The notes under the pieces: model-generated
The model's input: only the letters and a program-made list of their open reading frames with translations
Database searches by the model: none
What the model was told of the DNA's origin: nothing
Origin: Bugula neritina
Lineage: Eukaryota; Animalia; Bryozoa
DNA: 64,000 nucleotides
Direction: 5' to 3'
NCBI GenBank assembly: GCA_964035545.1
Contig: OZ037766.1
Coordinates: forward strand, 4,268,722-4,332,721
Part shown: positions 18,005-21,000 of the stretch, piece by piece
How positions within the stretch are numbered: the first letter of the stretch is position 1
Layout: every line of letters starts with the position of its first letter
Program-made: the position numbers and the translations under genes

Positions 18005-21000
18005 CCTCTATATATATAAATATATATATATACACATACACACATACACATATACATATACATATATCATGATACCATATAGGCCTATAATGTGATTTCT
18101 ATATTTAAATTTTTGCAGCTATTTCTTAAAGGCTTGCTAATTCATAAAGTAATTATTTTACCGAAAAGCAAAAAATATGCTAGTATTTCAGAAAACTTGG
18201 TACTAGTGAAAATATCATATAATTTATAGACTGCAGGTAATTGTGGAAATGGTTAGGGAATATCACTTGCTTACCTCTACGGAATTATATTTCTATAGTT
18301 GGTTAGATCACAGCTACTGTATACTTACAACAGAAGAATGTTAACTGTGTGCTGTAAGTGTTATAATATGAGAAATTCTGTAGAAGAGGTACTGGCAGTA
18401 GAGATTTCCTATAAGATGGAAGTTGGTGAAAGAGTAATTAAAATTGAACAGTGTTATTTACTTATTTAAGGTCTAAAATATTATAATTAATAAATATTTG
18501 GTGCTAGAAATGCTCCCCCCTACACTCTAAAGTTTAAATCAGTTTAAAATACTTATATTTGAACATGGAGTAGCTCTCATGATGGTTAATCTTTATAATA
18601 ATCTTCTAGCAGTTGAAAATTCCACCCAATAATGAACCGCTTGTCAGCTTGGTATATTATGAGAACCTTAGTGGGAATGGATACGTTGAGGTGGAGGCTA
18701 GCAAAGCAGTTCAGGTGAACATCTCAGCCAGTAGAAACAGATCACTAGAAGCACACCTGGGACCAATATACAAATCGAAAGTTTGCAAGCAATTACTGAT
18801 GGACCGATTCAAAGACAGGTGAGCCAACTAAATATCTATTGAGTAGAACCTAGCTACTCCTTTGCACAAGATATATAATATTTTTGAACAATTACTCAGT
18901 ATGTTGTTGATAAAATATTATTATAAGCATGTTCTCTTAAATCAGCCATGCATCTCATTATAAAATGTAAAGATTCGAACTGCTAATGCTTTAATCATAA
19001 ATCACAACTATAATATATAACTACAAAAGATATGCTCTTTTAATCGATCCATTGATTCCTTCAAGATAACATATTATAATAACTTATTATAACCAATAGT
19101 TCACAAATAGTGTATACTAACTTGCAAATGAAGTACCTAATAAAATAAAAGTATTATGTATTACAGATTATATATTATGCAAGATAAATATAAGAAGTTT
19201 TGTTTATATTTATTTTGGGAGTAATAATAAAAAACATTGTTTTAACAATTGTAGCAAGCTGGATATGAGTAAGACGCTACTGAAACAGATGTGTGAGAGT
19301 GATACTAGAACACTGTGTGTGGTCACCGGCGTGGTGAAGACAACCACCGAAGCTTCAGTGATCTTTCATGACAGTGCAGAAGGAGGATTCAACGCAAAAG
19401 TATAATGAGCCATCACACTGAATTGACTATAGTATACTTGACAGACTCACCTGACTATACATAGTGTACTTGACACTTTGACTCAACTACAATGTACTTG
19501 ACACACTGACTTGACTACTATATTCTTGGTCGACTGACTTGACTACAATGTACTTGACACTTTGACTCAACTACAATGTACTTGACAAGCTGACTTGACT
19601 ATAATGTACTTGACAAGCTGACTATGGTGTACTTAACACGTAGACATGAATGTAAATTTAGTTAACATATCAATGACTGTCAATGAATAGTAAGTTGACT
19701 AGGCAGGCATAAGTTTAAAATTCATAGTAATTTATCTCATGATTGTAAATACAAAGACAAGAGAATTTAAATTGTTTGTTCAAACTTTGGGTAAAACTCA
19801 AAGATATACGAGTATTGTATACAACTCTCTGTGGCCACTGGCCAGGTGATAGTTGCAGGTGGAGAAGTGAGTGGCGGAGGAGGTGGCAGCAGAAATACAA
19901 GAATATTAATGATGATTCCAAAAGAAACGGTGTTGGCCTACAAAGTAACCGAGTTACAGATCGACCGCAACACTGGTCAGTTTTCTTGATTATTTAAATA
20001 TATAAAGTGGAAAATGGGGTATAGTAAATGAGTTACACACTGCACACATGCAGCCTGTTTTGTGCAAGTCTCGTGAAATGTCAAAAACTACACAAGTTTT
20101 TATAACCATATTGTCATTTTTTACTTAAACAGCTTCAAAAAGGAGCAGTTTGATTTTTCCAGGTCTGTGTGTCCATGCCGGTTTGTTATGTTGAAACAAA
20201 CTGCTTTAAACAAATGAGTATCTTTCGAAATTGGTTAATTTTCTGCATTGCTTTTAAGATTCCTCGAATAAATGCAAATTATTAATTGCATTCTCACTTT
20301 ATATAGCAGTCGTGGCTATAATTGAGCATGAGTACATTAAATGTAATAAGATTATGTTCCTGTAGGTGACGCAGAAATGGTTCTATCTAATAAAGCCAAG
20401 GGTGGATTTGGTATATTTCAGACCACACGTCAGGGTAAGTTATAGTTTACATACTGGCTTCAGTATAGATGGTTTACTACTCCCTTTTATATTTATACAG
20501 CAGTGTACTATTACCCTATTCTACTTGCCAATGTTCCATGTTCAGCTACAGCTTTATTAAATGCAGGTCCAAATAAACAAACCATATTCCGGCACGGGAA
20601 GAGAATTGCAGCTCCCGAAGTTCCTTCAGCAAGGCTTTACCAGCGTAGTGCTTTATATGGTGAGTGCAGTTTAATACATTATAGGTGAATGTAGTATAAT
20701 ACATATAGGTGAGTGTAGTATAATACTTTGGTGAGTGTAGCTGAATACAAAGGTGAGTGTAGTGTGATACATAAGAGAGTGTAGTGTAATTATGCATAGG
20801 TCGGTGTATTGTAATACGTAGGTGAGTGAAGTGTAATGCAAATCACAATCGAAAATAATTGAAATATTGTGCATTTTTACCTTTTTGTTTTACAAAGTTG
20901 TGGCTTACAAAACTCTCAAAATGCACACTATTGTGTTATTCATTTCATTAATTACATTGGGCGTATTATATACTATATTGTATAAACTATTTGGTTTGCA

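Follow-up and report, generated by a model that had tools for sequence, protein, structure and literature searches.

Gasdermins form membrane pores once a cut in the linker releases their N-terminal domain. Two gasdermin copies of the bryozoan Bugula neritina, here called A and B, raise the question of how such a linker evolves after duplication. Both copies lie in one 64,000-nt stretch of DNA (the window). A basic linker exon, exon 6, differs between them at 26 of 87 nucleotides, giving 18 residue changes and 2 silent codons on an exact codon alignment, whereas the 132-nt intron immediately upstream differs at 4 positions. The original prediction interpreted this contrast as a hypervariable linker serving as bait for Arg/Lys-specific proteases of host or pathogen. 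Its nucleotide counts and its translations of exon 6 in both copies were reproduced.

Self-comparison of the window recovers an inverted duplication of ~15 kb (15.6-30.3 kb on the forward strand against 46.5-32.4 kb on the reverse strand). In each arm, a gasdermin stands tail to tail with an MFS (SLC17-like) gene:

15600..30273, + strand, left arm with gasdermin A and an MFS (SLC17-like) gene (self-comparison, profile matches)
32426..46545, - strand, right arm with gasdermin B and an MFS gene, colinear with B. neritina contig VXIV02001494.1
17551..23114, + strand, gasdermin A, 8 coding exons, 476 aa predicted, every frame open
39302..43674, - strand, gasdermin B, 9 predicted coding exons including exon 6b, 486 aa predicted

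All exons of A and B have GT-AG ends and open frames. Identity between A and B along the arms is a mosaic, ranging from 0 to ~40% difference per 100 nt. The two MFS genes (24650-30270 and 32426-38170) differ by 7% from each other and by 9-10% from their B. neritina counterpart, and numerous patches show no difference at all. Upstream of A, at 14289-15538, lies a third-copy remnant consisting of a gasdermin 3' flank and an MFS 3' end, which is the trace of an earlier duplication and deletion. A leucine-rich-repeat gene with a short helical C-terminal part (11658-13700) sits directly upstream of gasdermin A and is a possible immune neighbour.

In an exon-by-exon profile search, exons 1, 3 and 4 of both A and B match the gasdermin pore domain PF04598. 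Exon 1 scores 28.6 bits in A and 35.4 bits in B (cut-off 25), and exons 3-4 score more weakly. The protein KAF6032630.1 of B. neritina assembly GCA_010799875.2, here called N, matches the same profile with 93.5 bits (profile 1-238, E 1.8e-26). The best alignment of N is with human GSDME and runs as far as GGF 244 (phmmer E 1.5e-12, against 3e-5 for GSDMA3 and 0.002 for GSDMD, all pairwise scores rather than a tree). By predicted structure, residues 12-486 of N match the GSDME cluster (TM 0.64, Atlas). By these matches, A and B are GSDME-like paralogues belonging to the GSDME branch of the gasdermin family. The C-terminal domain profile PF17708 had no match in the exons of A and B or in KAF6032630.1, and a single-sequence fold model reached a pLDDT of 34.

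A relative of B exon 1 was located on a metagenome contig that is 99.9% identical to GCA_010799875.2. The contig of N matches the B arm, flanks included, in colinear order and with ~83% identity. Outside exon 6b, B and N share 79-91% of residues per exon, with the same exon structure and flanks. Because the intron distance between B and N (0.135) is lower than between A and N or A and B (0.20-0.23), and because the flanks are colinear, N is on sequence grounds the orthologue of B. By the same distances, the duplication of A and B predates the split from N. Searches for an orthologue of A or for other bryozoan copies returned only N and a 75-aa fragment, metagenome scans gave no match, and the data for the species of N contained no copy of A. 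N differs from B in being annotated as DFNB59 (pejvakin) and in a gene model that omits exon 6b. It bears the pejvakin name although its C-terminal region is full-length and its match is to GSDME. The annotation is probably the reason why surveys missed bryozoan gasdermins; we found no literature description of them, and Ectoprocta are entered as lacking GSDME in one survey (PMC11508797).

The features around the contrasting intron and exon are as follows:

20366..20434, + strand, A exon 5, last pore-domain strand and KGGF motif (human GSDME alignment to GGF 244)
41286..41354, - strand, B exon 5, open frame and splice ends
20435..20566, + strand, A intron 5, 132 nt, 4 differences from B
41154..41285, - strand, B intron 5, donor of the conversion tract, 9.8% from N
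20567..20659, + strand, A exon 6, basic linker exon, all 26 differences downstream of 20578
41064..41153, - strand, B exon 6, basic cluster at residues 255-264, kept in N
20660..20828, + strand, A repeat array of ~22-nt units with spare GTGAGT donor-like sites
22199..22509, + strand, A exon 7, main acceptor 22220
20398..20578, + strand, gene-conversion tract from B to A, with identical runs at 20398-20506 and 20525-20578 and a start possibly near 20335

The boundaries of exons 5 and 6 are identical to those in the NCBI model of N. Exon 5 shows 2 residue differences in every pairwise comparison among A, B and N, and exon 6 encodes 6 Lys and Arg residues in A and 7 in B. An in-frame alternative acceptor at 20501 lies inside A intron 5, and the resulting extension is open in A and B but meets a stop codon in N. 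A partly coding intron 5 was rejected as the main form on account of this stop, of the five replacements among six changes, and of the NCBI model of N, which takes the short acceptor. Tandem 22-nt repeats follow exon 6 in all three genes (A 20660-20828; B 41063-40752) and carry multiple GTGAGT sites. A has 5, one of them the donor in use, and B has 9; N has 11 if GTG(A/G)GT is counted. The spare donors could give rise to truncated isoforms. Further downstream, A intron 6 contains an 850-bp insertion with a high-copy short element at 21334-21462 (X1 contig depth ~4e5), and copies related to this element occur near the N gene.

The near-identity of intron 5 is exceptional for this locus. Four differences in 132 nt compare with a 20-23% A-B background in the unconverted introns of the 5' half (P ~1e-10). 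Intron 5 divergence is 3.0% between A and B and 9.8% for both A-N and B-N. The B-N value is ordinary against 13% for other introns (p=0.34), whereas the A-N value is low against 19-30% in other 5' introns. Among the 15 variable sites, A and B agree at 11, compared with 2 for each of the other pairings. Because A and B are closer to each other in intron 5 than either is to N, these three-way site patterns show that B sequence was copied into A after the split from N. The tract covers the end of exon 5, intron 5 and the first four codons of exon 6. A Sawyer-type run permutation test gives p ~0.01; it also flags a short A-N run at 19075-19090 that is probably alignment noise, and is thus supporting evidence only. 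Six more identical runs of at least 50 nt occur elsewhere in the gene and flank, with similar tracts in exons 7 and 8. Functional constraint on intron 5 was rejected, since its B-N divergence is ordinary. The statistical outlier is the intron and not exon 6. The headline contrast is mostly an ordinary gene-conversion patch, and the refuting outcome that the original prediction had named for the intron largely applies. All 26 differences of exon 6 lie beyond the end of the tract.

The divergence of exon 6 exceeds the local neutral level by a modest margin (binomial P 0.02-0.08, for 0-10 columns of gap masking). Between 26 and 30% of 87-nt intron windows reach 26 differences, and 12-30% are as diverged as exon 6, depending on measure and masking. 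Between B and N, 6 of 29 residues of exon 6 differ, which is not above exons 1-4 (Fisher p=0.26), and the basic cluster (NKRR, HxKKI) is kept. Between orthologues, exon 6 is hence not hypervariable as first proposed. The claim of a fast-evolving linker fares better on the branch connecting A to B and N (the A/B branch), where changes cannot be assigned to A or to the ancestor of B because three sequences are compared without an outgroup. On this branch, exon 6 has accumulated 18.5 replacement and 2.5 silent changes; the B branch has 2 and 3. The pore domain (exons 1-4) has 87.5 replacement and 21.5 silent changes on the A/B branch. Overall, replacement and silent changes number 106 and 24 on the A/B branch, against 39 and 38 on the B and N branches (p=4e-6).

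A three-taxon codon model (A, B and N, shared silent rates, no outgroup) gives exon 6 an omega of about 3 (3.3) on the A/B branch (p=0.001 against 1, p=0.03 against exons 1-4), a value to be read with caution as exon 6 was picked after the fact and a single-exon omega is uncertain on a mosaic background. Exons 1-4 reach 1.2-1.7 on the same branch (for 1.7, p=0.04 against 1). On the B and N branches, omega is 0.33 for exons 1-4 and 0.72 for exon 6. Compared to intron rates, replacement sites of exon 6 are ~1.6-1.9-fold high (p 0.004-0.03) and exons 1-4 are about neutral. Within-exon dN/dS of exon 6 is not significant, either between A and B (1.14, p=1) or on the A branch (2.35, p=0.14). The rate at silent sites of exon 6 on the A branch is 0.12 against 0.14, and at replacement sites 0.28. 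In exons 1-4, pN equals pS between A and B (0.19) and the A-branch replacement rate equals the intron rate. The pore domains of A (17551-19975) and B (43674-41753) differ at 38% of residues, with the top ratio in exon 4 (1.66), and the B-N comparison of the pore domain shows purifying selection (0.25). From these substitution patterns, positive selection probably acted in a past burst on a loosely constrained exon 6 linker, in a gene whose N-terminal half evolved fast as a whole. They do not establish a recurrent arms race.

The linker of B is longer than originally described, because a predicted 54-nt exon at 40464-40411 encoding LEED/A had been omitted. This exon, its counterpart region in A and the third gasdermin are:

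40411..40464, - strand, B exon 6b, 54 nt (57 with tandem acceptor 40467), phase 1-1, LEED/A
21072..21090, + strand, A gap of ~150 bp where exon 6b would be, bridged by a contig of run X1
2048553-2053974 on the same contig, 2.2 Mb away, third gasdermin, compact, DVVD/A 5-8 residues after GGF

The Asp of LEED/A is residue 294 of B, 51 residues past GGF. N encodes FEED/N with a 6-nt in-frame indel relative to B and with EED kept. B and N agree at 40 of 40 nucleotides ahead of the exon 6b acceptor (53 of 54 matches, P ~0.004), and both carry a perfect GTGAGT donor. The encoded protein has changed at 6 of 15 residues, so only the frame and EED are conserved. An independently assembled contig spanning 20549-21126 bridges the gap in A without differences and exon 6b is present once in the genome, which led us to reject an assembly error as the cause of its absence from A. 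A second source of an acidic site is an in-frame acceptor 21 nt upstream of the main acceptor of A exon 7, which would add an FDTD motif. This acceptor is open in A and N but unusable in B owing to a frameshift. The NCBI model of N skips exon 6b and takes the acceptor with FDTD. Hydrophobic-x-x-Asp linker motifs are hence LEED/A in B, FEED/N in N and FDTD in A only with the upstream acceptor, all in predicted exons.

The original prediction was right that the linkers of A and B lack DxxD, and this holds across all alternative acceptor and exon combinations found. DxxD occurs in N at one splice junction, and in A, B and N alike the nearest Asp is more than 36 residues from GGF. The step from a missing DxxD to proteases other than caspases does not follow. 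In amphioxus GSDME the activating cut falls at VHTD253, and even human caspase-3 can make it (PMC10155998); the FxxD/FEVD sites of teleost GSDMEb are caspase-1 sites (PMC9355259, PMC8122782). Because such sites work for caspases, a missing DxxD is a weak argument against them. Mollusc linkers have likewise been described as without an evident site (PMC9355259). The third gasdermin, with its DVVD/A, is the likely caspase-3-type copy judging from its motif; the 75-aa fragment, which comes from another sample, resembles its exon 1. Caspases are greatly expanded in the genome, with at least 177 exon-level matches (PF00656) arranged in tandem clusters, for example C1 32.8-35.5 Mb, C6 2.5-6.3 Mb and C7 7.5-7.7 Mb. 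Among 20 sampled matches, 15 have caspase-type His or QAC motifs and 9 have the Arg S1 motif, so that the sampled C14 proteases look Asp-specific. An Arg-specific paracaspase was rejected as a candidate, since a profile search of the genome found no MALT1-type Ig domain, itself a weak negative.

Copy number was read from contig depths in the single run X1, which behaves as DNA and apparently stems from the same colony. Contigs specific to A have depths of 56-65 and no allelic variants, and B-type letters have depths of 95-115 or appear as two contigs of 51-60. Exon 8 totals three haploid units, and one variant shares 4 of 10 letters with N. Gasdermin A is thus apparently on one haplotype only. 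With a 5' half older than the split from N, A might represent a long-lived presence-absence polymorphism. The coding sequence of A has no stop or frameshift in 1431 nt and two in-frame indels, against 36 indels in 1509 intron columns. The ancestral start codon has been lost, and a new ATG lies 7 codons upstream, directly after the acceptor AG (17551-17580), giving a short N-terminal extension. The absence of stops, the few in-frame indels and the new ATG argue that A is under selection to stay open. A pseudogene was rejected, as the frame is without stop or frameshift.

We favor, at a probability of roughly 0.55, an explanation that combines duplicated paralogues, gene conversion, caspase cleavage of B and a changed trigger in A. 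Both proteins would consist of an N-terminal pore domain, a flexible linker and an inhibitory C-terminal domain, and the inverted arms exchange patches by gene conversion. Exon 6 would be a portion of the linker that escaped conversion, under weak constraint and subject to a burst of positive selection on the A/B branch that also hit the pore domain. The most likely enzyme to open B would be a host caspase distinct from caspase-3, cutting at LEED/A of the predicted exon 6b, as the motif and its conservation suggest. A would have deleted exon 6b with the frame kept and, being probably dispensable given its single haplotype, would have changed its trigger. The caspase-3 role would sit with the third paralogue and its DVVD/A. 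The main objection concerns the activating role of LEED/A, given the position of Asp294 51 residues past GGF; the NCBI model of N also skips exon 6b. Cleavage of amphioxus GSDME at the distal N304 is non-lytic and inhibitory (PMC10155998); Asp294 is at a comparable distance, so that activation of B may not depend on LEED. A and B may be switched on by different proteases, and a trigger change in A is plausible from the loss of the exon. Among candidate triggers of A, a caspase acting at a leftover Asp such as FDTD is a tentative suggestion, and an Arg/Lys-specific or pathogen protease is doubtful. Regulation of A by splicing or by non-proteolytic means appears unlikely, and early decay of A quite unlikely.

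The distance of Asp294 and the position of the basic cluster keep the proposed bait alive. Arg/Lys-specific host or pathogen proteases would cut a fast-evolving exon 6 at its basic cluster, at least in A, and release a pore fragment of ~255-265 residues. The missing Asp within 36 residues of GGF is in line with such a cut, and the cluster (255-264 in B) sits where other active fragments end, as in amphioxus (253) and chicken GSDMA (244) (PMC10155998, PMC10948149). The omega of 3.3 on the A/B branch, the loss of the EED exon from A and its seeming presence-absence variability add to this case, as does GSDMA, a SpeB substrate whose caspase-1 site has been lost (PMC10948149). However, the cluster is conserved rather than variable between B and N, within-exon dN/dS is not significant, the A/B branch also shows acceleration of the pore domain, and the genome offers Asp-specific-looking C14 proteases without a MALT1-type Ig domain. 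Overall we regard the bait as improbable; for A specifically it is possible though unsupported, and a little less doubtful. The full scenario, in which A is a dispensable gasdermin that lost caspase control by exon deletion and now senses Arg/Lys-cutting pathogen proteases through a selected linker, is a long shot.

Relaxed constraint could produce much of the same divergence if exon 6 were a neutral linker in a redundant, drifting A, with 30% divergence simply reflecting the age of the duplication where conversion did not reach. The share of intron windows as diverged as exon 6 (12-30%), the equality of pN and pS in exons 1-4, the A-branch replacement rate at the intron level and the apparent hemizygosity of A all fit. 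The intact 1431-nt frame, its scarcity of indels compared to introns and the replaced ATG do not fit a drifting gene, and on the A branch replacement but not silent sites of exon 6 are elevated, making the explanation rather improbable. In place of a cleavage site, the cluster could be a membrane-binding or nuclear-import element; it is conserved in B and N and resembles a basic localization signal. Alternatively, the cluster could receive a second trimming cut after Asp294, and the spare donors may give an N-terminal-only isoform. The donor-like repeat array after exon 6 of A, B and N would suit such an isoform. Amphioxus GSDME offers a precedent, as a long inactive fragment is converted into a short active one and an isoform lacking the C-terminal part is lytic (PMC10155998). 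We rate this idea as very unlikely. The reading with caspase control of B and a changed trigger in A hence remains our preferred one.

The GSDMEs of corals, amphioxus, molluscs and humans share with A and B a PF04598 domain ending in KGGF, and GSDME N-terminal chains are the best solved relatives. They differ in that A and B have neither DxxD nor an Asp near GGF. The bryozoan linker is also longer and spread over multiple exons (a basic exon plus, in B, a distal acidic exon), and the C-terminal region is unscored by PF17708. The DxxD linker site of caspase-3-activated GSDMEs is found in the third paralogue but not in A or B. Teleost fish, in which GSDMEb (FxxD/FEVD, caspase-1 type) stands beside GSDMEa (DxxD), offer a likeness, as paralogues appear to divide caspase triggers between DVVD/A and LEED/FEED here (PMC9355259, PMC8122782). 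The teleost duplication is independent, however, and the bryozoan site lies ~50 residues past GGF with cleavage only predicted. Mammalian GSDMA (cut by SpeB) and GSDMB (cut by granzyme A) resemble A insofar as a paralogue was freed from caspase control after duplication, as A may have been (PMC10948149). A is orthologous to neither, and SpeB is a poor parallel for Arg/Lys cutting, contrary to the original prediction, because it reads a hydrophobic P2 and not a basic residue (PMC10948149). Compared to tripwires such as NLRP1/CARD8 or a GSDMA-like sensor, exon 6 has an omega of 3.3 on one branch and 0.7 on the others, among three sequences only. Paralogues that divide or lose caspase sites are a known kind of event, as in fish GSDMEa/b/c and mammalian GSDMA. 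In the literature covered here, invertebrate gasdermins with tested activation are caspase substrates, and Ectoprocta are listed without GSDME (PMC11508797). If A does sense pathogen proteases, GSDMA would have an independently evolved invertebrate counterpart in a phylum so listed. The three gasdermins differ in linker design, with DVVD/A in the third paralogue, LEED/A in a distal exon of B and no clear site in A, and together they form a natural series for trigger change after duplication.
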